A stretch of 64,000 bases of DNA from Gnetum montanum (lineage: Eukaryota; Plantae; Gnetophyta). Positions 3,536-46,200 of this stretch are shown here, piece after piece. The notes beneath the pieces were generated by a model. It did no database searches. It was not told where the DNA came from and saw nothing but the letters and a program-made list of their open reading frames with translations. The translations under genes and the position numbers were made by a program. The stretch covers positions 32,020 to 96,019 of the forward strand of contig MNCI01003262.1 in the NCBI GenBank assembly GCA_015680685.1, given 5' to 3'. The number at the start of each line of letters is the position of its first letter. Positions within the stretch are counted from its first letter, which is position 1.

Positions 3536-4145
3536 NNNNNNNNNNNNNNNNNNNNNNNNNNNNNNNNNNNNNNNNNNNNNNNNNNNNNNNNNNNNNNNNN
3601 NNNNNNNNNNNNNNNNNNNNNNNNNNNNNNNNNNNNNNNNNNNNNNNNNNNNNNNNNNNNNNNNNNNNNNNNNNNNNNNNNNNNNNNNNNNNNNNNNNNN
3701 NNNNNNNNNNNNNNNNNNNNNNNNNNNNNNNNNNNNNNNNNNNNNNNNNNNNNNNNNNNNNNNNNNNNNNNNNNNNNNNNNNNNNNNNNNNNNNNNNNNN
3801 NNNNNNNNNNNNNNNNNNNNNNNNNNNNNNNNNNNNNNNNNNNNNNNNNNNNNNNNNNNNNNNNNNNNNNNNNNNNNNNNNNNNNNNNNNNNNNNNNNNN
3901 NNNNNNNNNNNNNNNNNNNNNNNNNNNNNNNNNNNNNNNNNNNNNNNNNNNNNNNNNNNNNNNNNNNNNNNNNNNNNNNNNNNNNNNNNNNNNNNNNNNN
4001 NNNNNNNNNNNNNNNNNNNNNNNNNNNNNNNNNNNNNNNNNNNNNNNNNNNNNNNNNNNNNNNNNNNNNNNNNNNNNNNNNNNNNNNNNNNNNNNNNNNN
4101 NNNNNNNNNNNNNNNNNNNNNNNNNNNNNNNNNNNNNNNNNNNNN

Positions 4146-7100: not shown

Positions 7101-10100
7101 TGCGTCTCCCTGCATAGTAGCCCCCATAGGGACCTTCATGAGCATCCTGGAGAACTCTTAATTGATCCTCATCAGGCACACACCATCGAACCAAGCCATC
7201 AGGACAAACTTTATAAAGTTGTCCCTTGATTTCCATAAAGTACTTGGTTTTATGAAGAAACCGTTGCTTCTTCCTAAAGTCCAACCCCTATGGTATTTGT
7301 TGGGAAAGAAGATAAGTAAGAATGCTACTATACCAATTTGTTCCCGTGGGTTGGTTATTTATTACACCGGCAAAGAGGGTTTCATCAGGAAAATGATCAG
7401 ATACAGCATACTCGTCCTCTTTGCTGTCCCAGTGCAACCGAGATAAGTGATCTACGACTGCATTCTCGATGCCTTTGCGGTCTACTAATGTTAAATTGAA
7501 CTCTTGAAGGATTACCAACCAATGTATGATACGTGGGTTAACCGTTGGTTTGTTCATGAGGAACCTAATTGCACTATGATCCGTATGGATGTATACTTTG
7601 TAGCCCAATACATAGTGCCTAAATTTGTCCAGTGCAAACACTGCAGCCATTAATTCCTTTTCCATACTTGTGTAGTTGAGTTGTGCACCGGTGATACTTT
7701 TACTCGCACAATGGATGTAATAAGGGTGTTTGTGTTCATCTAACTGTGTTAGTATGGGTCCTAAGGTAGAATTAGATGCATTGGTCATTATATGAAATGG
7801 TCTGGACCAATCGAGGGCTTGTAGAATAAGGGTTTCCACAAGCCTTTATTTTAGGGTTTGGAATGCTCATTCACATTCCCTGGTCCATTCAAAGGGTGCA
7901 TATTTTTTTGTTAATTCTACCAACGGTTTGGCAATCTTGGAGAAGTTCTCAATGAATCTCCTGTAGTAGCCAGTGTGTCCAAGGAATGATCAGATGTCTT
8001 TGACCATTTCCGGTTGTCGAGTAATTCCTTGGATGACCTTAACTTTTCCAGGTCCACCTCTATTCCTTATTGTGAAATTTTATGCCCCAGTACTACGCCT
8101 TCTTGAAACATCAACTGGATTTTTTGCCAGTTGAGCTTTAGGTTGGTTTCAATGCACAGTTTCAGTACTTGCTCTAACTGGTCCAGGGCTTGATCAAAGC
8201 TTGTCCCATAAGTGGAGAAGTCATCCATAAAGACTTCTACTCCGTTACCTATTTGCTGTTGAAATATGCTTAGAACTAATCGTTGGAACGTGGTAGGGGC
8301 ATTACACAAGCCAAATGGCATTTGTTTATATGCAAACGTTCCCCAAGGACTGGTGAATGTTGTTTCAGCTTGGTCTTCTGGTGCGATTCGTATTTGGTTG
8401 TACCCACTATAACCATCCAGAAAACTGTAGTAGCGATGCCCCGCTATAGTGTCTAAGACTTGGTCAAAAAATGGCAATGGAAAGTGATCCTTGAATGTTG
8501 CCATATTTAATAGCCTAAAATCTATACATACCCTCCATTTGCCTCCTTTTTTTGAGATGATTACTAGAGGACTAACTCATTCGCTATCAGCAATGGGATA
8601 AATGAACTCAGCCCTGAGAAGTTGCTCTATTTCTTCTTTCACTATTTGTTTCCACTTCAGGTTCAATCGCCTCTGCGGTTGTTTTCGAGGCTTCATGGAG
8701 GGGTCTATGTAAATCCTATGCTGGCATATCCTAGGATCTTTTTCGGTTAATTCAGGGTATGACCAAGTAAAGGTGGTTGACCATTTATTTACCACCTTCA
8801 GAAAACACTCTTTTTGCTTGGGAGAAAGCTTTGCATTGATAATTACCGATCTTTCATTTTTAAGGGTCATGTATTCTAGACCGGTAGGCAACGATTTTAA
8901 ATCTAGGGGCTCTTGTTTAAATTCCTCAAGAATCTCCAACTTCCCCTAGTTAATGTTTTCAGAGTTAAGGGTTGGAAGTTGGCAACGAACTTGCTCAAGT
9001 GCGTCTGTGCTTTCAACGTAAGCACTAGTTATCCCCTCAGCTAGGTCCATGCATGTTATCGAGTTGCTCTCTTAAGTAGCCATCAACCACTAGGTGTTTT
9101 CTTATTGTGTGGTTGCTGCATATAGGCACTTTTGTATGTCAATATCTTGTGCACACCGATTTCATGCAGGTAATGTTAAACTTCGCATCATCCATGATTT
9201 CTGCACGTAATGGCACCCTGTGTCACTATATGCGATGCATGGAACTCTCTTCCTCTCAATCTTCCCAAAAGTATTTTTCTTGGATATTTCTAGAGAAAGA
9301 TTGCAGATTCCTAGGCATGCATCTATTGTACTCAGCCATGCCCTTCCCATTATTATCGGAAAATCCTCTTTGTCATTGTTTATTTGGATCACCAGGAAAT
9401 CAGCTGGGTATGACCAACCACCCACGGTGGTAAGAATGTCCTCAACCTATCCCAAAGGAATAGTGATGGACTGGTCAGCCAGCTCTAAGCGAATATTTCT
9501 CTTCTTGAGTGGAGGCAGGTTCCAGGTTTTATACATTTCTTGTGAAATTAAGTTGACTCCGGAGCCTGAGTCAAGAAGAGCCTTATGAGGTTCATTCCCA
9601 GTGACCTGAAGATAAATTAGGGGGCTCCCAGGATTAGATAATTTCTTGGGAATGTGGCATACCTTAATCTAGTCTGTTACGGTATGTGTTAACATAACCG
9701 TGTGCATTGGGCACGATTTTTTGTTTGAAGGGGGTCCCAAAACTTTATTTGGTATGGCAATGTTTTGATGTTCAACCGCTTGTGAGGTTGAGGGCTTAGT
9801 TGGATTGTTGGTCCTAAAGAAAAATCTTTTTGCCATAAAATTGTCAGGACCAATTAAGAATTGAGGATTGGAAGCCCTCGTGACATTGCGTTGTTGCGGT
9901 TGAGTGGGAAATACCCTTGGCATTGTTGGAGCGGTTGGTGGTGGAGCTATCAACGTGAGAGGTGCGGATGGATTTGGAGGATGGTATATATGTGGAGTGT
10001 CCCTTACGGGAGGGGAATTCTGATAATATTCCTGAACTAGGTAGTGATGTTGTGGAGTTGTGTAACCAATGGAGTCACTTGGAGAAATTGGCTGTTGCGC

Positions 10101-12210
10101 GTAGTAGCCATAAGGATTAGGTTAACGGTAAGGGTGTTGATGTTCAGGCGGTGGCATCCCCCATGACTATGGGTGTTGCCACTGCTAATGTTGTCCGATG
10201 GGTTGTGGTGGAGTTCCACTTGGATAGTACATCCACGGTTGGTGGAACTATCTTGGGTTACCTTGAGGATAAGGTAACCTTCAGGGTGTCTGCTGTCTGT
10301 TGAGTTTCAGGTTGAGTGCATACACCCCAGACTCTTGTAGATGTGAGATGATTGAACAACATCCCTTAGGATGGTCATATTGGCATATCTCACATCCACC
10401 GCCATTATCTGTGTTCGAATCCACAACCTCATCAGAGATAGTTATTTTCCCCTTACCCTTGTCACGTGCAGGGCCTAAATCTCTCCGCTTTTTCTTGTCC
10501 TTGTCACTACTTCGTTCCTCCTTAGACTCCTCTACGATTTTCAGAATAATTTCAATTTTACTGTCTAAGGAGCTCCATACTTCATCTACCTTAGCCGATA
10601 CTTCTGTTGTTAGCTTTTAAAGCGGCAAGGTTTTTCTGTTCACCAACTCTTCGAGTGATGACTCATCCTCTTCATCGCAAAATCTCACTCCCTTATTTCA
10701 AAGAGAGGGATCATAGTTATATTCCTCCGCGCTCTCTCTTTTTCGTAGCTCCCCTTCTTCTTTGGCTACTTGTTCCAACAATCGATGAATCTCATGGGAT
10801 CTAAGTTCTGATAGTCTCCCTTGGGCATAACTCCCAAGGGTTCTCCTAGTTTCATACCTTAGCCCATCTACAATGTGGTAGAGTTGATCTCGTTGTGCAT
10901 AACCATGGCCCGAGCAACGATGTAACAATGAATAGTAGCAGCCCATGGCAGCATCCAAGGGTTCATGAGTACCTTGCTTCCATCCTTGGATCTACTTACG
11001 CAAGTTAGACACTCTGGAGTACATATGATATTTATCGTTGAAGAGTTCTAACATCATACTCCATCTCCTAATGGTTTCCAGTTCTAAGGACCGGTACCAA
11101 CTCTCTGCTTCCTTGATGAGTGTCTTAGGAAATAACTTTAGTTTCTGCCACTTGTTTTCTATGTTTTGCAAGGCACAGGCATCATGAAATGCCTATAAAT
11201 GATTTTGTGGATCAGTGTTATATCCCCCTTCGAAGAGTGGGATGTTATTCATGTCTAAGCGCTTGATCCGGCTAACTTTTTGATGCCTTGTTGGGATTCT
11301 CACTGCCTCTGTGATATCTAGCATACTTCAGGTGGCAAGTAGGGGTTCATCATGATCATCTCTTTCATGATGTCTATGATGTCTACGTTGTTCCCTACTT
11401 TTCCTTCGTTCATGTCCTTGTCCTCGCTCTCGACTCTCTCGTCGAGGTCTCTCATTTTTTCTACCTCTATCCTCACCGTTATGCTCTCTATGACTACGCC
11501 CAGAGGTGGAAGGAGGGGGTGAATGATGTGATGAAGGGGAAGAAGAAGGAGAACCATCGCTATGACGATTTTTCCTACCTTCTCTTGCGTGGCTTCGGCC
11601 CCAATCGTGAAGACGATCTGAGTGCCCGTCCTTGTCATGTGTTGTTGTTCCCTCAGTGAACAGTTGGCATTCACAGGGATCAGAACCAGGGTTGTGTATT
11701 ATGGAGTGAAGGTTCTGATACCCCACCTCCTCACTATCATTAGGAGGGGAAACATCATTTGATGGAGAACCCATTATAAGTGGTTCACCATCTCCAATTT
11801 CACTTAGGACATGCGGGACCCCTTTGCCCTTCAACAGTGTATGGTGGCTCTCCTGCCTTGAGTCCCTTAGACATTGTGCAGCTGTGGGATGGTAATCCCT
11901 CATGTCAAAATCTGCCGCAACGTATTCAATGTATAATTCCATCATGCCTATCTATGCCAAAGCACGGAGAAGCATGTTGGGGACTACATGATCTGGAGGT
12001 AACACTATGTTACCTTGCAAGTCTCTCCAGCGCATTTGTTCATCCTGATGGAGAATAAAAGTAAAATTGGGTATATACTCATCAGGATGAGTATATACCA
12101 CCCTATATTGTTGAGGAACTGGCTGATTTTGGTTGTGTTTTAGATTGCCGAATATTTCTTGTATTATCCCTAGGTGGTGTAATGCTCTTATGAGAAGAAG
12201 AAGAAGACAT
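4146..12210 (-). mobile_element. Ty3/gypsy LTR retrotransposon (Athila-like, non-chromovirus), internal region with degenerate gag-pol
   Basis: Retrotrans_gag at about 10700-11300; protease ALLDSGSGVNLI at about 9550-9590; RT DHFPLPFFDQ..FLDGYSGYNQI..MPFGLCNAP..VFMDDFS (8067-8760); RNase H (7288-7839); integrase H2C2 and core (ISDNGTHF, YHPQANGQAE, WEGPY; 6060-7284). Domain order PR-RT-RH-INT, with many stops and frameshifts. LTRs were not identified. Confidence 0.93.
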
Positions 12211-21200: not shown

Positions 21201-21819
21201 TCTTGGTATAAACATATGTTAAGTTATAATCCTCAAGATGTCTTGGACCCCATAGCCTACATGTGTGTTCTTTTCTAGAAATTTACATCCATCTTGGTAA
21301 ACTTTTGAGTTTAACTTATTACCTCTTGAAAGTTTAACCCATTGTTGAGCCAACTTATGGAAATACTTTAGATTACTTTGTATCATCTCCGATGACATCT
21401 CAAGTCTTCAACCATTTTATCCTTGTATAATGCCATCCCTATTCCTTTATATCTTCAATAATTACTCATAAAATTTTAATTTTTACCATTGTTTGAATGC
21501 AAGCAATGAACTAAAAGCATGAAATAGCGTACAATTCATCAAGGAATTCAATGATCATCAAATTTCTGGATAAAAAAGTAGTGAATTTCATTTCCATTCT
21601 TGTAAATTTTGCTTCGAATTTGATTTATGCGTTCTATTCTTGCTGTGATATTTTTGTTTTGTGCACGTTCATGTGATTTCAGCCTGCAACTTAACAACAT
21701 TTCCGTGAAAACTGTTGCTTTTGATGACCTAGGTTCCACGGCAGGTAGACGCAGAGTATAGAAGGTAAAGCGGCCGATTGCGAAGAGTAAAGCAGAGGAG
21801 GGACTTGAACTTCAACTTG

Positions 21820-24800
21820 ATGGAGCTGAGGCGTCGTGTGCGAGGCGAGGCAGATGGAGATGAGCATGAACATGATTTGCACTTTGTTGTTCCTGAGCAG
21901 GAGCAGGAAACAGCAACATCAGGAGGAATAAGAAGAAGCAGTGGCAGCGGCATTATTGACAATGACGTTGGCTGGATTTTGCCTTTGATGTTTCTTTTGG
22001 TCGTCCGCATCTTGGGCGCATTTGCCAACATCATTCATGACTGCGACGAGGTCTTCAATTACTGGGAGCCTCTCCATTATCTTCTCTACAACTCCGGCTT
22101 CCAGACATGGGAATACAGGTAGCTTACCTTTCCATCTGGCCTTTCACATCATCTTTAAAACACTTTCGTTTTTCGTAGCAAATTGTCTTGCCATGACTGT
22201 CCCCTTAGTCGAATCTATGACGATAATGACAACAGCACTGCCATTTTCGTTTTCTGCATTTCAGTGCTCAGTTTGCTCTACGTTCGTATCTATATCTTTT
22301 ATTTCATGCACTGTTCGCTGCACCAGCTTCCTGGTTACTTGGCGCGGAAAAGAGGGTAATTCTACCAGGCGCCATCATCGATGTTTCGAGATCACAAAAC
22401 GATGATTCTTGATTTTGACCAGGCATGTCTTTGATCATGCTTTGCAGATTTCGGTATTTTACTTTATGAGGCTTATTCTAGGTGCTTTATCTGCAATATC
22501 GGAGACAATTTTGGTAGTAGCTGTTTCTCGAAAATATGGTAAGAGGCTGTCATGGACGACCTTGGTGCTTCTTGCCTTCACAACAGGTTGCTTCGCTGCT
22601 AGTACCAGTGAGTTACATTCTCTTTAGCTTCATTCTTTGGAGCGTACTATTTTTTAGTTAATACTACAATCGTATAAATACATTGCATTTTCGACAAAAT
22701 TACTGAATGTATGACCTTATCATACATACTTATTCCTTCTTTTCTCCAGGTTTCTTGCCCAGCACCTTTTCGATGTATACTTTGACCCTTGCATCCGCCA
22801 CGCTGTTGTTTGATAGGCCTGCACTTGCTGTGGCAGTCGCTGCATTTGGGGTACTTGTTGGCTGGCCATTCTCATTTTTATGCTCCGTGCCCCTGGTCAT
22901 TTATTCTTTGACACATGGAAATTTCAGTAGAGTGTTTCTTAGTGGTGCTGCAACTACAGTTATTGTGATGGTTGGTAACGCCCCACTTCAGTAGTTTACA
23001 TAGACTTTCCTTTACAGTGTGCTGCTCTTTGACATCTTTTATATATGGTGTTGCAGGCCCTGTCAATTTTAACTGATTATTATTTCTATGGGAAATGGAC
23101 ATCATCTGTGATTAATCTTCTAACATATAATGTTCTTTCTGGAGGAGGGAAAAGCCATTTATATGGAGTGGAAGGCCCATTATTTTATTTCAAAAATTGC
23201 TTCAACAATTTCAATTTTGCATTTTTGATAGCCCTTTTATTCTTTCCAGTGATGCAGCTGACCAAGAAAAGAGACTCTACTCCACTAATGGTTGTGGTAT
23301 CCCCTGTTTACATATGGCTGCTATTTATGTCCTTACAGGCTCACAAAGAAGAAAGGTAGAACTTGTTCAAGCGTTTTTGTATTTTCCTGGGAATTCAATT
23401 TATCATTTTTGAGCAACTATACTTTATTTCATTATGCAATGACTTAACTGGTAACTTCTAATTTCTGATTTATACAGAAAAAGCTATTTCTAATTGGAAA
23501 TTATCATGCTATTTATTAAGTTTGGATAGTGAGATTAACAATAACGTGTCAAACAGAATTGAAGCATGATGGATGAAATAGTGAGAAGCTGTTAGCTAGT
23601 AGCGTGCTTTGTGACAGGAGAATCCCTGCAAGGCTGAAGGGAATGTTCTATAGAATTCCTATTAGACTGACAATTCTTTATAATGCAGAATGCTGGTGTA
23701 CACATAACATAGATGCAGATTCTAAGGTGGATGTTAGATGTGACTAGGAAAGATAAAATCAATAGCTTTTCTATTAAGGGAAGTTTGGTAGTAGCAGCCA
23801 TTAATGAGAAGGTTAAGGAAAGTTGTCTTAGATGGGTTGGTCATGTGCTAAGAAGGCTAGAGAATGCACCTACTAGAAGAGGTCACTTTATTGAAGTCAA
23901 AGGAAAACATGAAATGGTTAGACTTAAACATGCATGGTTTGCAAACATAAAGAAAGATGCCCAAGATTTGAGTGTTAATGCTTATTTAGCTCTTAGTAAT
24001 AGTAATGATAGAAAAGAATCCATATAGCTAACCCCTTGTAGTTGGGATAAGGCTAGGATGATGATAATGATAAATGCTATTTATTAAGTTGCCAATAATT
24101 GACATTCTTATATTTGTGGAACTAGCATAAAAGCAAATAACTTGTGAGGGATCCATTTTTAAACAATAATTTTATATTAAAACTGAAACTATGTTCATAA
24201 ACCCATAGGATCTCTTAGATAGATGAAATATACATAGTATAGGTAGTAAACACTTCATTAGTAAAGTTACCAAGTTGGTGCTATTTCAAAAAGGTCAATG
24301 AAACTATTATTTGTAATTTGCAATTTGTTGTGAATTTGCTCTAGAATGGACATTCCAGGAATATGTGATGCTCATTTGCAATTGCTCTTTGATTGCATAA
24401 AAGATAGGTTCTCTCTTCTCTTGGAATCTTAACCCTTTTACTTGTTTCAATTCTAAAATAATGCCTTGCTTGGCTAATATGACATTATAGGTGATAGGAT
24501 GTAGGGGCAGACAAATAAGTTGCGTTCTTGTTGATGCCTCCTCTAATGCTACCTAAATAGAATTGTTTCTTTCCTAGTGGGTTATCTGAGATGTGGAAAA
24601 GTCCCTTGTTTTTTATACTCTTACGGAGTTGCTTTATATCACAATGTAAAATCTCCACCTCAATGTTTCATTTTTGAGCCAATTTTTCCCTCATGGAGCC
24701 ACAACTATGCCGATGATACCATGTTCCTTTCTAGGGCAGTAGTTCCCTAGGCATGGAGGATTGATTGGGCTCTTTTACGTTTGGCCTTGGAAATTGGACT

Positions 24801-27800
24801 GGAGATAAATTGAGGAAAGTCTTCAATTTATTTTGTTAACGTCAATCCTAGGATGGGGAGTCATATCTCGTAGGTTTTGTGGATTTTCTCGGGTATCCCG
24901 CAGGGTTCATATAAGGGTATCTCTTTGTTTGAGTGGGGGAGGAAACAAACGTGGTATAAACTTATCCAGAAAATGGAGGCTTGGGTGGGGCACTGGATCA
25001 ATTGATTCCTTATGAGGAAAGGCAGAATTATGCTGGCCTTGGGGGTTCTTTCTACTATCGTGAGATTTGTGGCTTTAGTGGTTGTCCTTCCACAAGCTAT
25101 TGTTTAGTAGCTTAATCAATTAATACGTAATTTTGTGTGGTTTGGGAGGAGAGGGGGTAGCTGGATGCATTTAATCAGTTGGGGAACCATTGCCTGGCCT
25201 TAGGAAGTAGGGGGATTAGGAATTTTTAAATTTGAAGACAAACTTATGATGGGGTGCTAACATTTATTTATACGAATTCTTCAAAATTAGGCGGGGGCCG
25301 CTCAATGGATTAGGATAATGACAAGTATTGGTGTTGGGATGTGGGGCCCCATGACTTGATGATATGGAAGACACTTTGCAAACATGCATGGTTCACGTTG
25401 GCGCGGGGTTTGATGGGGGAGCGTCTACGGTGGGTTATTTGGGAACCCTTTGGTGGATGGTTGGAAGAACATTTGGTGGGGCCAACTATTGGAGAAAATT
25501 AATGTCTTCATTTGGCTAATCGAGCATAGTGCACTTCCTGTTCATGTGTTGTTAAGATGACAGGGGCTACACATTAATGATGAGTGCCCATTATGCTCTG
25601 GTCGCCCTGAGATGGTGCTACATTTTGTTTTCAGTGCCCATACATGTGGGACATTTGGCAAGATGTGGGTTTGCATGGTTGTGCCAAGTTAATGGGGGAT
25701 TCCAAAGCGATGCTTATTGTTATGGGAGATCTGGAAGATACGCAATCATGCTATCTTCTGACTATAGCATGTTCTGCTACTTGCGCAAGTCCTGCTTAAC
25801 GCAACTTGTGCGTGGCAGGAAGTGAATGCCACAATGGGAGTAACAGCTGCATACGAGCTAGCTTGTGTGACATATCATGCGAATTAGGAGTTTTGGAGTC
25901 TTGTGGAGTGGATTGGGTGGGATGAGATCCTGCCTCGACTGGAAGGGGACTTGGCGTTGGCTAACGATTTCTTTTTTACGAACTAGAGTGGGGATGCCAT
26001 AGTTTTTCGTGGGACTAGAATTGTGTTGATTGAGGTGGCGTTGGCCCTATACCTAGGGATCTTGGCGAATGGGGAAATGGTGTTGTCGATGGTGTGTGGG
26101 TTACATGACATAGAAATGTTCTTCACTGCCGTTGTGCCACATTCCAGTAGTGGTCAAGTGCCAAAATCGGCGTTGCCACTGATCTAGAGATAGGCGGCTG
26201 AGTTGGTGGACAAGTTTTTTGTCCACTTTGGAAATGCTTCTAAACTCTAGAGTGCACATTTTGCACTCTTAAGTGCATGCGTCTTGAACGTCAGGTCAAT
26301 CTCCCTAAATTTTTTTTGGAGGCGTTGGGCAAATAGCGCAGAGGTTGACATTTAGGGTTAATCCTTGTGCTTTGGTGGGCTACGTCATTGGGATGGTCAT
26401 AGGGGCAGCCGCTTGGGCTTATGTCGCCATGTGCTATGGTTCACTCTTGTTGGTCAACGCTGTGGAGGAGACAAGGGTTTCATGTGCTTGATATGGTGGT
26501 AAAGGTTGTTGAGGACCCTAAGGGTTCCGACTTGCTGGTAGGGCAGGATACCTTGGCTATGTCGTTGTGTATGGCAGAGGAGGCGACGGAGAAGGCTAGG
26601 TTTGAGGAGCATAAGATTTGGGAGGCCAAGTGGGGTGCTTGGGAAGTGGTGTTCCAGTAGGTGCAGGCTCAAATGGTGGCCCATTTTAGAGAGAGAGAAA
26701 AGGAGCTGTTGAGGCAATAGGCACTTTGTGAAGAGATCTCCCGAGTGGTGTTGATTGATGAGTTGAGGCCTTAGATCAGTGAGGAGTTGCAACAAGAGGA
26801 GTGACAAGATTATGAGAGGCTACAATAGGTGGTCTAGGAGCAGGAGTGCGAGGAAGCAGCACAGTTGCACCGATAGGTGGACAAAGTTCATGTTTAGAAT
26901 GCCCATATGTGGCTTATGACAAGGTGCTACCCTTATTTGGCACTAGATATTCACCAAGATACTATGTGGTTGGCCCTTTGTTGGCACATCTGTAGAACGT
27001 CTTTTTGGCTCCATCTTGATGGGAGAGGGTCTGTTGATGATTGTGCTAAGAAGGAAGTTGCTTTCAAGGACTTTTAGGAGGTGATGGTCTTTGTTGATTA
27101 TGAGTACCATCGAGAGGTGTTCAATGATCTTCATAATTAGGAAATTCTTGATTGTTCTTGTCAAAATCTGTCTAAGCATCTATAGTGAGCCTAGCCACTG
27201 GAGGTCCAGGGACCCACAGTTTTAGCTTTTTTAGTTAGTTTGTCTTGTCTCTTGATCTTTAGTTTGGGGGGAGGGGGTGGTCCATAAAACCCTAAATTTT
27301 GAGGGCTTGGTTGCTAGGAGGAGAGATTGTCTATGAATGTCTTTTGTGGGGGTAGGGAGCTAGATTGTGTTTTGGGGCTTTTGAGGAGGGGGGTAGTTAC
27401 CCCCTTTTCTCTGGGGGAGGGCCCGTCCCTCCTCCACCATGGTGTAAATCATCTTGATTGTACAGTTTTTCTCTTTTTGTAATATAATTCTGAACATTCT
27501 CTCTCTCAAAAAGAAAAAGAAAAAGAAAAAGAAAAAGAAAAAAAGACTTCCTTTGAAAATTTAGCTCTTGTTCTACAAGAGAGACCATGAACATATGTGA
27601 CAAATTGATAAAGGCCTTCTATTTCTAAGAGCATCATATCTGCATCAAGAAGCAACCAATCATATTGTATATGCCTTTTCACTTGAAATTCTTCTATCAA
27701 AAAAATGTTTCTAAACTTATTCTATTTTTTTTTTCCAATATTTGTTAGCAAGTCTAGGATTCACACTACACACCCATACAAAAGAGTTGGTTACACAATA

Positions 27801-30800: not shown

Positions 30801-33800
30801 TCGTAAGTAGGAACTACTTGAACATAGACTTTCAATGAGAAAGGATGAAGCAATACAATGCTGCATTTAGTCTATGTCAAGAATTTCTTTGATTTCTTGA
30901 AGCGCAATAATGATTTTTAAACTTTCACTTCTTTCCATACGAAGTCTTGTTTAGAAGGTAAATGAAGTCCATATCAAACTTTTGCTAAAAGCTCTAATAA
31001 AGGTATCCACTATGTCTCGTACGGTATTACAACTCTACATCATTTTCTAATGATATTCAATTGTTACTAGAAGAATCAAAAAGAAACCAGCTTGTCCACA
31101 ACTTCCCACTTTTCCACTTTCTTTTAGTTGGATCCATTTGCCAATGTGGATGCATTGTGGTTGTCTTCTTGAAAATGGCTTTAAACATTTAATGTGTTTT
31201 GGCTGCTACAATGAACTGATTGTGCCATTTTCCTCCATTTGACTTTCCTTCTAGGACTATTCTGATGTCGTTCTTGAAGTTGATTAACATGGTGTGTAAT
31301 TTTGTCCCTTGTATAAAATCAAAAGTGAAAAAGAGTAATGTACTCTCAAATACACATCCTTATCAAAAGTAAGAAGGGAAAACCAATGTAGTCCGCTCTT
31401 ACCACTGAGACTTCTACTCATAGTGTTTTCATTACCTTGGATACCTCAAATCCATTGAAGTCCACCTTTTTAGGTTTTTGAAGTTGGTGGCCATAATTGA
31501 AAAAGCTATCCTTTGGGTAGGAAAAGCAGTATGGGGTCTATAATGCTTCAATTGCATCCTTGGTGGTTGTCATAACCTACATAGACACCAAGAAGCAATT
31601 GTTAATGTGTTGGATGGTTTTTGTTGCAAAACAAGCTTTAGTTCCTATGTTGTCTATGCTACTTTTGGCCATGAGTATGCACTTGTAATCCATGTACGTA
31701 CTACTTCTTGTTGTGGATCTATGATTGTGCATGTGCAATCCTTATGTATGCAACCTGTGTAGTGTAGATTTGTGTGCACATTGCCTACGTGGTGCAGATT
31801 TGTGTACACATTGTCTATGTTATGCAAATTTGTGTGGACACTGCTTGTGTGTCTTCACCCGTAGCTATGTACCTACCTTTCCATGTTGTTGCATGCCTAA
31901 ATTCCTGCGTTGCCTTTGGGCATTGTTGTGCACCTTTGATCCTCATGGTGAATCTAGAGTCCTCTATTGCCTAGCAGTTCCTTGCTCATTTTTGCAAATA
32001 GACAAATACCTCCCTTTGAACATTTTGTCTACACATATCTCATTGTACTATCTACGCATCTCTTCATGCACTTCAAGCTTCAATTACAGGTAACCTACAT
32101 TGATACCATACGCATCTCTTCATGCACTTCAAGCTTCAATTACAGGTAACCTACATTGATACCATGCTAGCCTTGAGAAGTGAATGCTTCAAGCTATCAC
32201 AAGAAAAACAAGAAAGAAGTATGTGTATTTAGCATGTAATAGAAATACCTCAAAAGAAATGCATTCAATTAAATCATCCAGTACATTGTACATTATAAAC
32301 ATGTAGAGAGGAAGTGCCTCTTTATACAATGTGTTAGGATTAGGGTTTGTATTGTAATTGCAAAGTGAATACAATCTTGAATAGTCAAATTGGATGTCTG
32401 AGATTTGGGTGTTAATGCTTACTTGGCTCTTAGTGGAAATGAATGGCAGAAAAGAATTCATATAGCCAACTCTATGTAGTTCCGATAAGGCTAGGATGAT
32501 GATGATGATGAAAGTGGACCCATTCTCTAGAACTGCCAAACTGAAACTGAAGCTTTATTGTGTCTAAAAACCGACAGGATCTGTTGGTTAGATATTACAT
32601 TTTCATAAAAAATAAAGACAGACTCTGCAAATTGACCAAGCACCAATGGGGGCAACAGAAACAAATTATAAAAGTTTTTTTGCTGTAACATTATAATGCA
32701 GTCTATAAGTAGTTATAGCACAAAAAAGGAACTTGGGCAACTCATCCTAGCCTTATCCCAACAAAATGGAGTCAGCTTTAAAATGCCAAACATAGTGATG
32801 CACTTCATATAGACCGACACATTTTTGTACTTTTTTTCTTTGATTTCTTTTGGAAACAATGTTGTAATCTTTCCTTTTGTTTCTTATATGGATTAGGAAC
32901 ATAACAAGTTTGGTAGTTTCTTATAGAGTAGATGGTGGTACAGCTAGAACATTCCGTTCTTAATAATTCAAATGAACGAGCCATATTTGCTCCTGATGGC
33001 TTGTAACATAACTCATTGGTTATAAATGGGGTTCATGATGTTTCATGATTAGAAAGCTTTCACTGTGAGTGATGTACAATTACTTAGACGTTTTACATGG
33101 TTTGCATGTGTATGAATGATGCTGATTTCACGGAGTGACGTGGGAATGCATGCAGAGCGTGATTTGACAAAAAAATTAAGAAAATATATTGTCTAAACAT
33201 AGTTTTTATCATCTATTTAAATTAAGAAAAAGCTAAAACTAATTTTTGAGATTGCTACAATAAATTAGCAAGTTGATAAGAGAACATTTGAACAATGATT
33301 TAAAATTTCAACTGAATGTCAAGCATTTATGATTGGGGCCATGACAGTAGTTGTCTGGTGTGTAGGCGCACAAGAGTTTTTGTAGGAGTGAACTCTTGCG
33401 TAATATTGTTTGTTTTCTCGATAAGCTGTTTCCTTAATTGATTCTCGTATTTGATGTACTTGAAAGTAAAGGCATCATTGTTAATCGTTCCATGTTTTCA
33501 TGCTTGTGTGATGTTTCCTTTTGGTACCCAGCAAATTTTGTATGCATAAATACAAACTTCCTTTTTGGCATTTACTGGTTTATATTAAGTTTATAATCTC
33601 TTGTTAACTATGATTTGTAAACAGGTTTCTCTATCCTATATATCCTCTCATCTGTCTAGCAGCAGCAGCAGTGATAGAGAGGATTCCTGATCTAATAAGA
33701 AGGCTTCACATTGTTGAGGCAGGCTCAGTAGGTTTCATGGTATTATTATTATTATTTGCGTGTACACGAGCAAGTCTTTAAAAAAACATATGTTTTTATA

Positions 33801-37272: not shown

Positions 37273-40200
37273 ATGGGGTCGGCCAATCGCGCGTGTTCAA
37301 TGCCACTGCCAGAGGAGAACATTCTTGCGATGCTGGATGTTATTGGCGTTGGAGAGAAGGGTGATATTAAAGATGACAGTATGGTCCTTATTCTCCATGA
37401 TTTTTTTAAGGACAATTGTTTCTTTCGTTTCATTATCCTCTGAGTTGTTAGTTTGCTAGCGAATTAAGGGAGATTTAAGGACAGCATGTGTTTTTTGAAT
37501 CAGTGATTTCTTTCCTCAATGCGGTTCGAGGTCTCTGTGTTACTCCGCAAACGCCACAAGCTCCTACGCGGTAAATTACTACTTTATACCTTAATCATGT
37601 TGGATTTCGCTGGTACTGAACCGTTGGTTTCTTATGCTTTTCCATCCACCGTGTTTTGGGTCATGACGAACTTCTTTTTACAAAGTTCAGGTAGTGTTTT
37701 TACCTGCTTGAATGTTGATGATTTCGAGGATACTGGACAGTGAATAAACAGGATGTCGTTAGTCTTTTTACAGCAATAATACGCTTTTAGATGTATTGTT
37801 GGTCCATATGTTAACGGAGATGATAATAAATTGATATGCTTGTGTTTCTAACGGTTTTTGTCTGACTTAAACGAAGGAAAATGCATGCAGCTGTATTCCG
37901 AATTTTCAGAGATAGTGAATACCTGGATCTCACAATCTTGAGCTTTCAATTATTGACTGACCTTGCAAAGGTACGCAGGAATTGATCTTAACATGGAACC
38001 TATTTTTTCAATGGGGATTCCAGTTTTTGTCTTACAGGTATTGTTGAATGCAGAGTTTTCCGTTAGTTACTGTTTCGAAAGATAAGTCCGGAAAACGGCT
38101 TCTCATTAACCGTGATGTAAGTCGTTGTCTGGTTGGTAATTTGGTGCAAATTCTACGTCCCTTATTGGTTTAAGCATAATCTGAATCGACATAATTGACA
38201 GGTGTGGTCTCCTTTTATTCTTAACTTGCCTAATAGTTCCAACAGAATGAATGGTCTTCCTAATGGAAGCTGTGAAGCATTGGATAGCCCTGTAAGTTGG
38301 TTGCTCTTTCATGCGGATATGTTTGTTCTTGGAGAAAGAATATAGTTTGGAGTTATTAGATTTTATTTTTGGCTGCATTTAATTCCATTGACAAAATAAT
38401 TCTGCTCTTTTAACAAAAATGTTGAATCTTCTTGGTTACGTTCTCAATTTTTGAACAATCCTTAAAGAAAGGAATTTAAAGCTTCTGGCCAACCATTGTT
38501 TTGGTATGGTTGGTAAAGCATACTTCAACAATACAATGTAAATATCTCATCTATGATAGTATCACATTTGTTGATGTGCCTCTGTTGTTGGCAAGTATTC
38601 ATTGGCAACTAATTCCCTTAAAAAAAGTAAAAATACATACTTCTTTGGTTCGCTACAAAAAATTTGGATTCAGCCTAACCTTTGTAAGAGCATTGGGTTA
38701 AAGAAGCAGCAAAAATTAATGGCTATCATGTTTACAATGAAAAGTTTTCTAAAAGTGGTTTGGGCATGTTAAGTTACTGTCAAGTGCAAGATTGCTGGGT
38801 TAATGCAATGATGATCTGACTTCACGTGCAGAGAAATCGATCTATTTGTTAATGATTTATATAGACATTGAATTTAATTACTTTTTTGTGTCTAACGGTC
38901 CAGTTTTGAAGTCCAGAGTTTCATTATCTGTAGCAATGTACATATTTAGCGACATTAAATCATATGTACTGTTTACCGAGTGAATGAACAATGAACAACA
39001 CAAATGAAAAATTGATTTCTGTTTTACATGCAAACCGGGGGTGAATAATGAGAATGATGACAGTACAAAAGAGGTTGTCTGATTATGATTTGGTACCTTC
39101 TTACAGTTACTGTAATGCCCATGATTTAAAAGATAGTTATTAAGTAGCAATAGTAATCCTGAAAAAACACATGGGGCAGTTTGAAAATGTGGTGCCAATA
39201 TGATATCCATTGGGATGAATTAACCAGATCTCAAGGGCCATGCAAGTGCTAAATTGGTAAGCTGTTTGAGAAAATAGAAAATCTACTGTACAGTAGGATA
39301 ACATTGAATCTCTAGACGAGAAAGGATTGCTTCCATGCATTACAAGGTTGGTTCGCTTTATAAGGGAGATGGTGAAGACGATAACCAAAATCCAAATTTC
39401 CAAATCAAGTCCAAGCCAAATGCACAATTAAACAATTACAAAAGCATTTTTATTACTTGGAATGAAAATTGAAACATGAAACAAGCTTACAGAATGATTT
39501 GGACCAAGTTTAGTATCCTAATGAACAACAAAAGTCTCTTCAACCCATGATGGTCTTCATGGATTGAGATAAGACATTCACACTTATACATTCAAAGCTT
39601 CACAACCCAATGACAATTTTTCCTTGGAAATGGGCTGGGTTATACTAATCTCAATCCAACGAGTTACAAGATACGAAAAAACGGACAAAGCTTGAGAACG
39701 AGAAATAGCAACCAATGCAATAGGCAAGCCTGGCTTAACCAGCACAAAAACAATGAACAAAAATAGACTGGCAGAGTGCAGCTCAACCTATGAGAATAAA
39801 AGTGTAGAATTCTATAGACAACCATTGTGGAGATGACGTCTCCCAAACACTAGGCCACACTCTAAAATGCCCAAACCTTTCTGAAGACATCTCCTCCATA
39901 AGCAGATGTCTTTTCTTGAGTAACAAACACGACACCAAATATTGAACAGGTTGATTTGAAAATCAGAAGAATAACCAAACACTATTGTGTTAGACTTAGC
40001 TAGGAACATATCAACAACATTGGTGAAAACAAGCATCATGCATAAAGTTGATGTAGTCCCTATCATCTTCATTATTTATAATGTAGTATATATCTTGGAT
40101 GTGTTGGAATGTAGAAGTCTCTTTTCCCACTTTGTTTGGATGGCACTGCATGGATGTTTTCCTGAAAGCTGAATGAATCTACATTCTTGAAATGTATGTG

Positions 40201-43200
40201 CTGGCATCCAACTCTTGGAAAGGGAAAACAACCAAGGTGAGAATCCTATCATAGGCATCCTTTTTCATTTGGTTTTTGTTCTTTGCATATACCTAGGCAA
40301 CCTGCTCTTTTGATTTCTGTAATGCCCTATCCTCAACACTGTTATTGTCAGACCCCTTCTTCGCTACATCTTCTTGACCCTTTGAAGTTTCATCTTGTTG
40401 CTGGGATGAGTTAGACATTGCGTCTCAGCCTATTTCTATATTGCTTGCTTGTCATCTCTCATCATGAGTCCCTCTTCCCTGATGTTGTAAGCTCTTGACC
40501 CATAAGGTTCAAAACAGTTAGAGTTGGGTTGGTAGTGGATCGCAGTTGGATCTAAAATAGCTAGGATCCATTTGGTTGCTGTCCATAGTGCTAAGATCAG
40601 ATCATAGTGTTTGGAATAATCCCTTTTCTACAAACATTGCAGAAGTGGTGGGATGGTTGATAGACCTTTTGTACTTCATGGCTTTTGGGAAGCTGAAATG
40701 CAACCTTTTGAGCTTTGACGCATTGCTAGATTAAATAAAGTATCTTTCTACTGCTTTATCGTGTATTGTCATACAGAGGGGAGTTTGGAGCATGGTATTT
40801 GCCCACTTGAAGTGTCTTGATGAGGGTTTTCTAGGAAGTCTACAACATCATGCTTACCCTAGTAGTAAATATTGAGTTTTTTTGCCTAGTTAGGGATTTG
40901 CAATATCTTTGTGATGGTTGCTTTATATAACGGGATGGAGTCATTCCTATATATAGTTTTCTTTCTCCTCCAGTTCCTATGAAACTTTGTTGGGTTAAGG
41001 TTCCTATCACCTTTTAATTTTAGAAGAAGGCCATCCCATTGTACATGCCATCCTACTGTACACATTGCACTAAATCCCAAAGCTTTGGAATGGTACTGAA
41101 TCGATTGGCTTTTGGCTCCACTGTTGGAGTAACCTCCATGGTTGCTTGCAGGAACTTGTAATCAATCCTGGCTGCTGCAGCTACAGGGAATGGGTTTGGA
41201 AGTGGAGCATCCGTAATGAACAATAGGATTCTTGGTTTTAAAATGTGCCAAAAGATAAGAGCATGGTGGCCTTTGTAGTTGATGAGTGACGACATAGGGA
41301 ACCGAGCTTCATGCCACATGTTAGAAGTCGTAGGGTAGTTCATGGAAAAATGATATGCTATCTCTGCCAGCCCCTTGCACATGGGGTAGATGTTGTTAGT
41401 GATAAGATGTCTCCCCTTCAAAGTGGCTCATGTGAGGATCCTCTCCCCTTGTGCCAACCAAAGTATTATTTTGATTTTCTTCGGGAAACTCCCTACCACT
41501 TTGACTTCCAATTTCACAATGCTCTGTTCTTGGCCTTGAGAATCTAAGCTATTATTGGGGGAGAGGATGGTCCCAAAACATTAAACCCCATTTCATTAAG
41601 GTGTTGTTGTTGAGTGCAAAGCCTTTTTTAAAGAGTAGAGTTTCTTGGATTGGAAGTCCACATTTGGTACTGGTGTTGTATCATGCTGATCCAAGGAGAT
41701 TTTGATACTAGATTTGATGAATGAGTTTGGCAGTAGTAACAAGGGTAGTATCTTTGATGGTCTATATTCTGCATCCTCTGTATTGTGTTGGCTTGGCTAT
41801 ATCATTCCATTTAGCAAGGTGGATTCATTTATTGCCTTTCCGTCCAAACCAAATAATGTCCTTGATAGTTTTATTGAGTTCCTTAATAACAGGAGCAAGA
41901 GGAGATGATGGACACTTTGCATCTTATCATCACAATAATGATGGAAGTGGTTAGGATACATTTACCTTTATTAGATAGAAACTTATTGGTCCAATTATTG
42001 TGTTTGCTTTGTGTGCTTTGGATTAATGATTTTCAATTATTACTTCTGTGCCATTTGAATACTAGGAATCCCATGGAAACATCCTCCTCTAAACCTGCAA
42101 TCATCTCTAGTTCCTGCAGGATGTTGGCCTTCAAAGAAGGGGCAATGTGGAAGAAATAGGCCTTGGATTTAACAAATGGCCATCCCAAGCATTCAACAAA
42201 TTATTCTATTTATGGATTCACGTGAACTAGAAGATATTTCCATCAAAGGTTCCAATTATACTTGCTGTAACATGCAACCACTTCAACATCAGGTGCTCAA
42301 CAAGATTGATTGCTTTTGGTTGCCTTGGATCACAGACTTTGTTACTATTCCTCTTTATGGTCACACCAAAAAGGGCACCTTTCAAATTTGAGCCTTTTTT
42401 TTTTGGCTCTCTAAGGATATCATTTACAACTAGGTAGCTAGCATTTGGGCCTCCCATAATAACACTCAACCCACAGGAATTTTTTACAAATGGACTATAG
42501 AAACTTAAAAGCTTCATTAACAATTGTAAATTTTAGGATATGTCATCTTGAAGCGATCAAGGAGGATTCAACAAATTAGAGAAATAGACCAAGTATTTAA
42601 CAAAGAAGGAAGTCATCTAGAAGTGATAAATCTTGGTGAGCACCTGATGTTGGAGTGATTGCTTGTTAGAGAAAGTATGATTGGAACCTTTGATGGGAAA
42701 ATCTTCTAGTTCACGTGAAGCCATGAATTGAATAATTTGTTGAATGCTTGGGATGGCCATTTGTTTCCTTCCTTCTTTTTCCCATTGATATAATTAAAAT
42801 CTTCCCCCACCAGTCAATTGATGTTCTTAGGAACATATGCTACCATCTTTGCAAGGAACATGTATCTCTGTTTTGGAGATTATGGATCGTAGAAGTCTGA
42901 TGTACAAAATAATGTATTTGGCAAGTAACAATGGATAAAATAATCAAATTTAGAGATAATGTGTAAGGGTCACTTATTAATGATCACAAAGTCCTCCCAC
43001 CATGTTTTTAGAAGGAATGGTGAGGGTTTACCAATCTTGCCATTGTAGATAAGATTGCTCATGTGGTAGAAGTTTTGTTTTTTGAGGAACAATAAACTAA
43101 GCATCCTAGTCTCAAGCTAAGGAAAGAAGGAAATGTCTAAGAGGTTTCTAAGCCCATGAGTTCCATGAGATGAACTTCATCACTTCACTACATTCCACTT

Positions 43201-46200
43201 GTTGCATGCAAAATGTTTTAGAGTTATTTGTGTCCCAATTGCAATTCTTCTAGGGATTCTATAAAATGAGTTTGTATAGTGATGGTCTACCTAGCTTCTT
43301 GGATGTATCAACCTTGTGTGGATCAAAGGGGGAGATGTCTACCACTTCCATGTCTATATCTTCCATTATGGAACTCGTGGTTTCAACTAGTGTGGTAGGG
43401 AATCTATTACCAAGAGAGATGTTGGCATTGTTTAGCTCCTCAACCCCATTTTTGACTAGTATTGAGACCATTGTTTGTCGAAGTTGTTGTGCTTACATTG
43501 ATGTCTAAGGTGATACTGGGTCTAAGGCATTATTTTCTTGTGCTTCATGGCCCTTTGTGTCTTGAATTGATTGTAGGCTTCAATAGCACTGGGGCGGTTG
43601 TTGCTTTCTTGGTCTCCTCATTGTGTTTCCTGTTATGATACTCTTTGCTCAAGTGCCCTCCATTTCTATAGAAACCACATTTATTTGTTCTAGGTTTTCC
43701 TATTTGACATTTATCCTCTTGGGTTTGTAACTCCCCTAGCTCCTTTTTCCTGTTTTTGGAATCTAGTACTTGGTGACTAGGCTTTCCATAGTGGTTGTGG
43801 GTTAATGATCTCTTTAGGCAGTATTGCATGATATGGGCCTTGCTAATGCATGGCTTGCATCATGGTGGAATGTTTTTGTATTCCACCTTGAGCACATTAG
43901 TTTCTCACTTACTAGTTAGTTTAATATTTGATACATTTTTGGTGTTTTCAAAACCCATCCAAATTTAGAAATGGGCAATAACAAAGTAGGGTTGTTATGA
44001 TGATCCCTTGTCGAAAAAGATCAGTTCCCCAAACTTCTAGGCGATTGTTTCTAGCAATCCCCTAACCTAGTATTTTATTGTAAAGCTTGGGATGTGAATC
44101 CAAATTGGGGCTCGTTCAAAGATGGAGCTATCAAATTGTGTTCTTAGCCTTCATTGTGCCAACATGATCACTTGTGAGGACATTGTCTCAATCCTTAGCC
44201 AAAGAGAAGTAGGAGAGTAGCATGTCATTAGGCAGTGCCAAAATTTGAAATTGTTGAATGTTTGTTCATCTAGTGGTGGCCCAATTGTGACTTTGCTTGA
44301 TCTGAGGTCTAAGGCCTATTCAAACAAATTTTGTGATTAGTGTAAACTCTAGTCTCTTGTTTGCACTGTCACAATAGGAATTTAGCATTTGAAGCTTGAG
44401 GTGGCAAACCTACAAGGAAGGTCCCATCATCAAGACTCAAAGGAGGAAAATACTAGCCACTCAAGGTCACTACAACCCACAAATGCAACACACGCACTTG
44501 TGGTTGCTATGATGCTCCCTAGGACCCATCTTATCTCATTCAATCATTACCACTTATATTTTCTCTTGATGTAGGTAGTTCTCGCTTACATATGTGCGTG
44601 CGACACACAATGTGCCACGGCACTTCTGCACTCCCATTCTCTTGCCTGCCTAGCGAATTTGAAACCTTCCAACCAATGACAATTTTAAACCTTAAAAATA
44701 AAATTTTTAATTTTTCATAATATTACATTAAAAATGTTTTAGATAATTATGGTGTTTACAAAATCTTTTGCTTATATGGAAAATATTACATTGGTCAACC
44801 TAGCTAAACTTTTCAGTTAGACTGAAAGAACTTCTGAAAGATATACTACACAATGAAAGATAATAGTGGAATTATTTGCATTATGGATAACCATATAAAT
44901 AGAAATATTACATAAACTTTTAAAATTAGAAGCCATTCCATTGGGTTGTTTTACCAACTTTGCTTAGAGGCTTCTTTTAACAAATGGGGCCTGTTTATAA
45001 AACTTGATTAAATAAAGTTTATTTGAATACTTATTTCTTGTTTTTAGCTTTTTATAAAAATGTAATTTATCAACAATTCTTGGTCTTTAGTACATTTTAT
45101 TTACTTTTGTTTTATTGGTACTTCAATTTATATAGGTTATTTTTTTCCTGTCTGTAGTTCATATTTTTTTTTTCAAAAAAGTTCAGGAAATATATTAATA
45201 TAAACATGATTGTACAAAAAAAATGGCCTGAAGGCCCTACACACCCGATTTCAGCCAACCACCCGCACAAGCAAAGTCGGGTGAAGTCAACCCCCACCAG
45301 CAGCATCATGCTGGTGTGAAAAAGATGACAAAACCTCAAAAGGACAAAATAGGCAACAAAAGCTAGAATTGGCACAACCAAAGGCGAAGTCAAAACATAG
45401 CAAATTGGCCCCACAACCAAAAAGCATCACCCTTATAAACGGGTGGGAAGGCCAGAGTACTCACAGTACGCCCTCTCCTCCTCATGGGTTCTATCCAGTG
45501 TATTCCTATGATGTTCTAAATCCACAAAATGAGCTACCTCTTGGAAGTTTTTGAACTCCTTTGCTTTCCCATACATTCCTCCTTCATGCCCTTACCATCC
45601 GGATGCAAGTCTTTGCCACTGCACCTAACGTGGCACCGAAGCGCATGCCACGAAGTGGTACGCCCTATGTTCATAATAACGTAAGGGCATTGTCCCTACC
45701 TTTGCCAAGCCTTGGCCCTTTGCGCATGAGCCCGATCCAACTGTTGGTGGATCATGGCTACCTCCTGTTCCTTGTGTGCACATCTATCTTGATCTTCCTT
45801 TTCCCGAAGCTCCTGCAGGTGCACCTCCTCCTGGATTTGCACCTGTAGACCCTTCTGTAGCTCCCTCTCTAGGGCTTCCCTAACAGCTGCCTCCACCAAA
45901 TCCTTCTTTGCTGCTCCTCTAGGTCTTGTTCTTGTTGCAGGTGCTTGACCTCATCTAGTTGGCATTGAATTGCAGCCTCACACTTATCCCATCTCTTTTG
46001 CCAAAGAGCCCTTTCCTCTTGGCATGCCCTCAACGCCATTGCCTCAATTTGCCCTGCTATCCTAGTATCTTGGCACGGAATGGCAATAGAGCCCAAACCT
46101 CTTGACACACCATTAGTACCACCTTTCCCAGCTGAAACCTCCAACACCACTCCCCTAGACCCCCTAGGGGGGGTGGGGGGTAGCCCAATAGCTGGTCCAC

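Follow-up and report, generated by a model that had tools for sequence, protein, structure and literature searches.

Six copies of a plant L1-type long interspersed nuclear element (LINE) lie in the 64,000-nucleotide stretch of Gnetum montanum DNA analysed here (the window), and in each of them the second open reading frame (ORF2) is extended beyond its customary end. We interpret these copies as remnants of an old and diversified lineage in which ORF2 runs on past the zf-RVT domain into a first tail domain (TD1), then into a charged stretch and, in some subfamilies, into a C-terminal J-domain, and we put the probability of this reading at about 0.8. The tail is fused to ORF2, it lies within the retrotransposed unit, TD1 and the J-domain have been under purifying selection, and the C-terminal module is a J-domain. 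A prior reading of the region 25720–27185, made from the sequence only, had described an L1 LINE with an extra module of ~450 amino acids at the position where RNase H would sit. That description stands: RVT_1 and zf-RVT are matched in the family, the tail follows directly after zf-RVT, and the distance from a conserved Met at 25834 to the stop codon at 27183–27185 in the copy concerned (copy B) is about 450 codons.

Assignment of the family to the plant L1-type LINEs, with RVT_1 and zf-RVT, a probable DUF4283-containing ORF1 and the probable start of an apurinic/apyrimidinic endonuclease (APE), is supported by Pfam matches in two of the copies. RVT_1 is matched in copies E (E = 3.7e-7) and F (E = 0.004), as is zf-RVT (PF13966; E = 5.2e-15 and 8e-15, respectively). 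A decayed piece of ORF1 in copy F matches DUF4283 with E = 7.6e-5 and 22.9 bits, which is under the cut-off of 27.2, and a 41-amino-acid piece of the same copy (53885–54007) matches Exo_endo_phos with E = 0.0047 and 17.2 bits, also under the cut-off (24.5). A plant L1 layout of this kind has been described (PMC5203782). In copy B, zf-RVT and the WxIWKxRN helix that end a canonical L1 ORF2 are located at 25453–25800 on the + strand and are homologous to the zf-RVT regions of copies E and F (44% over 57 amino acids between B and E by tblastx).

The copies differ in completeness. Copy B (about 24450 to 27546, + strand) is 5′-truncated and holds the 25720–27185 module. Copy A (about 17880 to 14400, − strand) has the reverse transcriptase (RT), zf-RVT and TD1 in one frame, copy C (about 42170 to 39950, − strand) includes a J-domain, and copy D (about 47040 to 45350, − strand) is 5′-truncated at the WxIWKxRN motif. 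Copy E (50032 to 47419, − strand) is a 5′-truncated insertion with part of the RT, zf-RVT, TD1 and the charged stretch. Copy F (about 52500 to 57800, + strand) is the fullest, with a probable ORF1 (DUF4283) and APE start, RVT_1, zf-RVT and TD1. All six are dead, with decay stops and/or shifts, and broken frames were read with X at each break. Within the window, copy B has a single relative at the DNA level, namely copy F (55924–57767; 76% by blastn), and A, C, D and E are colinear with B from the RT through the tail at 28–47% amino-acid identity (tblastx). Compared with B, copy F lacks ~0.9 kb after position 57767, equivalent to B 26543–27480; this internal deletion has taken away most of the 3′ untranslated region (3′UTR) along with the linker, charged stretch and J-domain, and the sequence resumes in the last part of the 3′UTR. 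Runs of N that represent assembly gaps occur at about 3540–4150, 52577–52624 and about 54670–54710, with one run falling inside the ORF1 region of copy F and another inside its endonuclease/RT region.

The continuity of the frame from zf-RVT into the tail is the first point on which our interpretation depends. In copy B, the tail peptides lie in the + frame that also encodes zf-RVT and WxIWKxRN, and in all six copies the ORF2 frame goes on past this motif into a conserved domain. No stop is present across the junction in copies C and E; the end of zf-RVT together with TD1 occupies 40605–41427 (− strand) in copy C, with the junction contained in the stop-free segment 41056–41427. In copy A a single, unshifted frame can be followed from 16545 to 15205; it takes in the end of the RT and the whole of TD1 and is broken by 19 scattered stops. 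A frame of 381 codons with 4 stops extends in copy E from 48816 to 47674 and covers the WxIWK motif, TD1 and the charged stretch, with a 1-nucleotide shift just upstream of it, inside the motif. Copy B has the motif and the tail in frame, and its two junction stops correspond to R and Q in copy F, where the junction has a shift. Copy D begins at the motif, which is followed by TD1 (46361–47040, − strand). These observations agree with the sequence-only reading, in which the junction had been described as in frame in A–E and shifted in F. Further into the tail, copy B maintains one frame from 26268 to 27185, encompassing the end of TD1, the charged stretch, the J-domain and the stop (306 codons, 14 decay stops). 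Its only shift is the decay frameshift within TD1 near 26266, a point at which copy F is continuous (57454–57561). One frame in copy C, from 40757 to 40014, covers the end of TD1, the linker and the J-domain. The simplest reading of these overlapping segments is that ORF2 was one ORF, which would have encoded APE, RT, zf-RVT, TD1, the charged stretch and the J-domain in that order.

An unfused arrangement has to be weighed against this one, in which the tail would be a separate downstream cistron ('ORF3') starting at a Met-Gly and expressed via reinitiation or a subgenomic RNA. All six copies preserve the Met with which TD1 starts (at 25834 in B and 48723 in E), and in five of them a Gly comes next, copy C having Met-Glu; the Welwitschia relative of TD1 discussed below starts at the same Met. 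This residue may be the start codon of a captured gene, or it may be an internal initiation site. However, there is no stop between zf-RVT and the Met in copies C and E, copy A is in the same frame across this interval, and the near-junction stops of A, B and D are all at different positions, so that no conserved stop separates ORF2 from the extension in these decayed copies. In addition, the ~30 codons between the WxIWK motif and the Met are conserved as protein. We regard the separate cistron as unlikely and favor the fused ORF2.

The second point concerns selection on the tail. When distant copies are compared using stop-free pieces, only the proposed frame aligns them significantly as protein, with z-scores of 5.5–21 relative to shuffles, whereas the same DNA shifted by 1 or 2 bases gives z-scores of −1.3 to 1.9. 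Identity within TD1 is about 0.55, 0.63 and 0.33 at codon positions 1, 2 and 3, and the corresponding values for the J-domains of copies B and D are 0.52, 0.64 and 0.28. Third codon positions are saturated, and the distant copies have no detectable DNA similarity. The recent pair B and F has codon-position identities of 0.84, 0.78 and 0.74, reflecting mostly neutral decay. Judged from these codon-position patterns, the tail evolved as a protein while the subfamilies diverged, with both TD1 and the J-domain under purifying selection, and the proposal that copies diverged in their DNA keep a protein pattern through selection is upheld.

The third point is the location of the tail inside the unit that was copied. 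Copy E is flanked by a 14-nucleotide target-site duplication (50033–50046 and 47405–47418) and ends in an A10 tail (47419–47428). Because its tail domains lie inside this insertion, the tail belonged to the RNA that was reverse transcribed. In copy B, the stop codon at 27183–27185 is followed by ~320 nucleotides of 3′UTR and then by an (AAAAAG)n tail (27505–27546), the whole LINE 3′ end spanning 27186–27546 on the + strand; because the stop, 3′UTR and (AAAAAG)n all come after the module, the module is inside the LINE and not beside it. A target-site duplication was also sought for copy B and was not found. We note that the type of 3′ tail varies by subfamily, with an (AAAAAG)n microsatellite in B and a plain A10 in E. 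Truncation at the 5′ end is seen in copies B, D and E. That copy D starts at the WxIWK motif and holds little other than the tail is what would be expected for a 5′-truncated LINE whose 3′ part is the tail.

These findings bear on the possibility that the tail is foreign DNA that was carried passively (through 3′ transduction, for example, or because an unrelated element or host gene fragment is nested there) and that it had no function for the LINE. Such an origin would be compatible with the failure of TD1 to match any known LINE domain and with the absence of the J-domain from some copies. However, the tail occurs at the same in-frame position in six copies representing at least four subfamilies that can no longer be aligned as DNA, the similarity is confined to one frame with third positions saturated, and the tail lies upstream of the 3′UTR and A-rich tail and within a target-site duplication. 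We therefore consider passive carriage very improbable.

TD1 comprises ~170 amino acids, is conserved after zf-RVT/WxIWKxRN in six of six window copies and is located at 25834–26333 (+ strand) in copy B. Its conserved positions follow the pattern LW-x-LV..GW..L..L.G...L....FF.NW......FRG..I.L, then ...SG.V....LP, ...G.ASKL...HF and ...VNLP.F; the alignment is too variable for a pattern search. The sole relative that we identified is a 91-amino-acid ORF from the transcriptome of another gnetophyte, Welwitschia mirabilis, found with E = 4.5e-7 in a profile search of 1.84 billion representative proteins. This ORF begins at the TD1 Met, and its ORF-type label in the source begins 'comp'. No further relative appeared when the profile, extended by the Welwitschia ORF, was searched against 5.8 billion proteins (word-indexed, E ≤ 10), none was found in a metagenome scan for TD1 relatives, and the TD1 profile gave 0 matches to PDB sequences. 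Neither the TD1 pieces nor the Welwitschia relative matched a Pfam family at E ≤ 10. TD1 is in this sense an abundant, selected domain with almost no representation in protein databases, a gap that is probably a consequence of the masking of repeats before annotation.

Structure prediction was of limited help for this domain. Two AlphaFold models of TD1, built from shallow alignments, are poor (predicted local distance difference test score, pLDDT, of 52 and 58) and contain helices and a single hairpin with a helix after it. A Foldseek comparison of the TD1 model with the PDB (best E = 3.2) and a wide VIA-align search with it (helix hairpins only, Z up to 5.2) were both uninformative. TD1 does occupy the position of RNase H after zf-RVT, and if it were a strongly diverged RNase H, the family would be an ordinary RNase H plant L1 apart from its J-domain. 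Yet there is no RVT_3, RNase_H or other Pfam match at E ≤ 10, the predicted structure has helices and one hairpin in place of a five-stranded sheet, and no RNase H is present among the fold matches. Since the models are of low confidence the exclusion is a moderate one, but we judge a hidden RNase H to be highly improbable and retain TD1 as a separate domain.

The sequence-only reading also likened TD1 to accessory proteins of the Transposase_32, ATHILA ORF-1 or plant-mobile-domain (PMD) type. Membership in these families is not borne out: TD1 has no match to PF20167, PF03078 or PF10536 in Pfam at E ≤ 10, and the fold searches are empty. What survives is a lead from protein language-model comparisons, in which a piece of copy E and the Welwitschia ORF, which share 28% identity, were used as separate queries and the only named neighbors of TD1 were Transposase_32 (PF20167) and ATHILA ORF-1 (PF03078), at 0.88–0.91. 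Transposase_32 and ATHILA ORF-1 are related families found in the accessory ORFs of Athila elements (PMC11728184). Like TD1, they are accessory proteins of plant retroelements, of the Ty3/gypsy type, with no assigned function; they differ in that TD1 is fused to a LINE ORF2 instead of being a separate ORF of an element with long terminal repeats (LTR), and no hidden Markov model (HMM) or alignment ties them to TD1. No Transposase_32 or ATHILA ORF was found in the window itself when 143 stop-free stretches of at least 75 amino acids, including those of a Ty3/gypsy element, were searched with Pfam. Kinship of TD1 with this group is accordingly offered here only as a lead from modeling. If it were real, it would link the accessory proteins of LTR elements, DNA transposons and LINEs.

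TD1 is followed by a variable linker of ~80 amino acids, which in copy B lies at 26334–26570 (+ strand) and is in frame with the charged stretch; part of the region (B 26301–26393) matches copy D at 46424–46332 by tblastx. Across the copies, the charged stretch is 60–110 amino acids long, consists of 45–49% E/K/R/Q and has almost no Pro or Gly. In copy B (26571–26897, + strand) it has 45% E/K/R/Q, 1 Pro, 1 Gly and 8 decay stops, and in copy D it is spread over two frames (45699–46231, − strand) with 48–49% E/K/R/Q. The stretch that follows TD1 in copy A has 31% E/K/R/Q and is at most a candidate counterpart of the charged stretch of the other copies. From composition only, the charged stretch is probably a coiled coil. 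A coiled coil and a 'His/Cys module' had been proposed to follow TD1; the first survives in this qualified form, and the second is a J-domain that had been missed.

J-domains are located at 26922–27185 (+ strand) in copy B, at 40014–40292 (− strand) in copy C and at 45433–45695 (− strand) in copy D. The B domain is decayed, has HLD at 27012–27020 and is followed by a short C-terminal tail and the stop at 27183–27185; the C domain contains HPN at 40134–40142 and one internal stop; and the D domain has an intact HPD at 45597–45605, a frameshift near 45571 and a stop at 45433–45435. The last of these aligns with the stop of copy B and marks the precise limit of the B–D similarity. The identification is clearest for copy C, in which the piece 40014–40178 matches Pfam DnaJ (PF00226) at profile positions 17–60 of 63 with E = 2.2e-6 and 28.1 bits, above the curated cut-off of 27.8. 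The best 16 PDB matches of this piece are all J-domain proteins, including Sis1, DNAJA1, DNAJC12 and DnaJ. We also built a small HMM from 4 Escherichia coli J-domains and used 1000 shuffles as a control. Copy C scored 17.8 bits and copy D, with X at the frameshift, 9.0 bits, and in each case 0 of 1000 shuffles scored as high (the best shuffle for D reached 6.2 bits). Copy B is connected to these two by its similarity to D, which amounts to 40% over 68 amino acids without gaps (E = 3e-17, BLASTP), and by an in-register alignment to C (E = 0.018). In the column of the HPD loop, copy D has HPD, copy C HPN and copy B HLD, and the loop between HPD and helix III is 6 residues longer in the B/D-type domain than in C. 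On this comparative evidence we identify the C-terminal module of the tail in B, C and D as a J-domain.

Other searches with the same pieces were negative. Pfam gave nothing at E ≤ 10 for the charged stretch or for the B and D J-domain pieces, BLASTP produced no alignment of the B and D pieces with E. coli DnaJ, and phmmer found nothing in the PDB for the B piece. The single PDB match of the D piece by phmmer (E = 0.87), to a nitrite oxidoreductase subunit, was rejected as spurious. A six-frame scan of the window yielded J-like matches only in C and D, with C the best, and no J-domain in A or E. The J-domain is therefore dispensable or lost in subfamily E and probably in subfamily A.

Several observations weigh against the interpretation developed above, or against parts of it. 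No copy is intact, and the single ORF is a composite of overlapping segments seen in different copies; compensating insertions and deletions in the poorly conserved linker are possible. The kept Met, with its following Gly in five copies and its initial position in the Welwitschia ORF, would allow separate initiation. The better of the TD1 models is still a poor one (pLDDT 58), and the kinship suggested for TD1 comes from language-model comparisons. Considered alone, the J-domain of copy B is undetectable, scoring −1.3 bits against the E. coli J-domain HMM. Both HPN in copy C and HLD in copy B depart from the required HPD, and the sole copy with HPD (D) is frameshifted. Copies E and A are without a J-domain and copy F lost its J-domain by deletion, indicating that the domain is not needed by every subfamily. 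Finally, the recruitment of Hsp70 proposed below is drawn from domain identity alone.

What might the tail contribute to the element? The established activity of a J-domain is the recruitment of Hsp70 and the stimulation of its ATPase through the HPD loop, and because the J-domain has one established activity, we propose that active members of the family would recruit host Hsp70 in cis, directly to the ORF2 protein. The element would in this way bring its own Hsp40 function, which could serve in the folding of a large RT protein or in the loading or remodeling of its RNA complex. The charged stretch would multimerize or space the protein, and TD1, which may be distantly related to the Transposase_32/ATHILA ORF-1/plant-mobile-domain group, would have nucleic acid, chromatin or a host factor as its binding partner. 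Elements of this scheme have parallels among viruses: the hepadnaviral RT depends on Hsc70/Hsp40 in this way, and a J-domain is present in polyomavirus T antigens. The module described here resembles J-domain proteins (Hsp40, DnaJ) in that copy C passes the Pfam DnaJ cut-off and copies B, C and D align in register at the HPD loop, and it shares with the T antigens the property of a selfish element having its own J-domain. Unlike either, it forms the very C-terminal end of a reverse transcriptase. Because the 'His/Cys module' of the sequence-only reading is a J-domain, the likely function differs from those suggested there; the 'anti-silencing' and 'chromatin targeting' roles are guesses.

A broader version of this model is that, in a seed-plant L1 lineage represented at least by the present genome and by Welwitschia, a working J-domain loads host Hsp70 onto the LINE ribonucleoprotein (RNP), and that the domain between the RT and the J-domain is shared with the accessory ORFs of LTR elements and perhaps with plant-mobile-domain proteins. 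We hold this version tentatively, as a conjecture that is rather more apt to fail than to succeed. If true, it would imply an exchange of domains between two classes of retrotransposon and a novel route by which a LINE exploits or escapes its host. A selected extension with a J-domain would, for its part, make testable the idea that chaperone loading limits the assembly of RT-containing RNPs.

To our knowledge, LINE ORF2 is usually described as an endonuclease and an RT followed by a Cys-rich end, with RNase H as the only addition known in plants. RNase H appears as the plant variant of ORF2 in an L1 survey across 500 species, and plant L1s with an archaeal-type RNase H after zf-RVT are attributed to Smyshlyaev et al. 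2013 in PMC5203782. Those elements and the present family are alike in having RT and zf-RVT, probably also in a DUF4283-type ORF1 and APE, and in carrying an extra domain at the same C-terminal point of ORF2. They differ in the nature of the addition, which here totals ~450 amino acids and combines an orphan domain with a charged helix and a J-domain. Gain of a foreign domain at the C-terminus of ORF2 is also known from another non-LTR group, the insect R1 LINEs, in which a viral-type superfamily 1 (SF1) helicase domain is found (PMC4686597); the clade, the host and the domain are different, and there is no chaperone-recruiting module in R1. Orchid Ty3/gypsy elements have acquired an N6-methyladenosine (m6A) demethylase domain (PMC9289625) and provide another case of a plant retrotransposon fixing a host-type functional domain, although in an LTR element and with another domain. 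Neither a LINE or other retrotransposon with a J-domain nor a plant L1 with this tail was found in full-text searches of the literature, Repbase and Dfam being outside the scope of the search. As far as these searches show, a selected extension of 450 amino acids with a J-domain would be the first fusion of a retrotransposon RT to an Hsp70 co-chaperone module.

The window as a whole is plant-like eukaryotic DNA. It contains, besides several LINE remnants that stand out by their strong GC skew, a Ty3/gypsy pol and an ALG9-like mannosyltransferase gene with introns. The ALG9-like exons are at 21769–23409 on the + strand and match Glyco_transf_22 in four pieces, the best with E = 5.4e-29. A short way downstream of them on the same strand, possibly within an intron or the 3′ region of the gene, is copy B. 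RNA reads over this copy do not exceed about 1×, a depth that is uninformative on the activity of the family. Directly upstream of copy B, at 23604–24027 (+ strand), is the C-terminal end of another LINE/RT family, with ORFs of 47 and 104 amino acids, which is unrelated to the tail-bearing family. The decayed Ty3/gypsy pol occupies about 5000–12200 on the − strand and matches RVT_1 (E = 2.3e-26), RT_RNaseH (E = 4.8e-30), RT_RNaseH_2 and Integrase_H2C2.

Between the unrelated LINE remnant and copy B, a sequence of ~35 nucleotides (24037–24071) has a depth of ~2900 among DNA contigs, compared with ~6 in its surroundings. It is also the only spot that is well covered by RNA reads, and reads over it diverge into many different flanks. 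The sequence resembles a short dispersed repeat that is highly abundant, or else a fragment of a miniature inverted-repeat transposable element (MITE) or short interspersed nuclear element (SINE), and it has relatives within the window at 32393–32512, together with an inverted 39-nucleotide match at 32742–32780.

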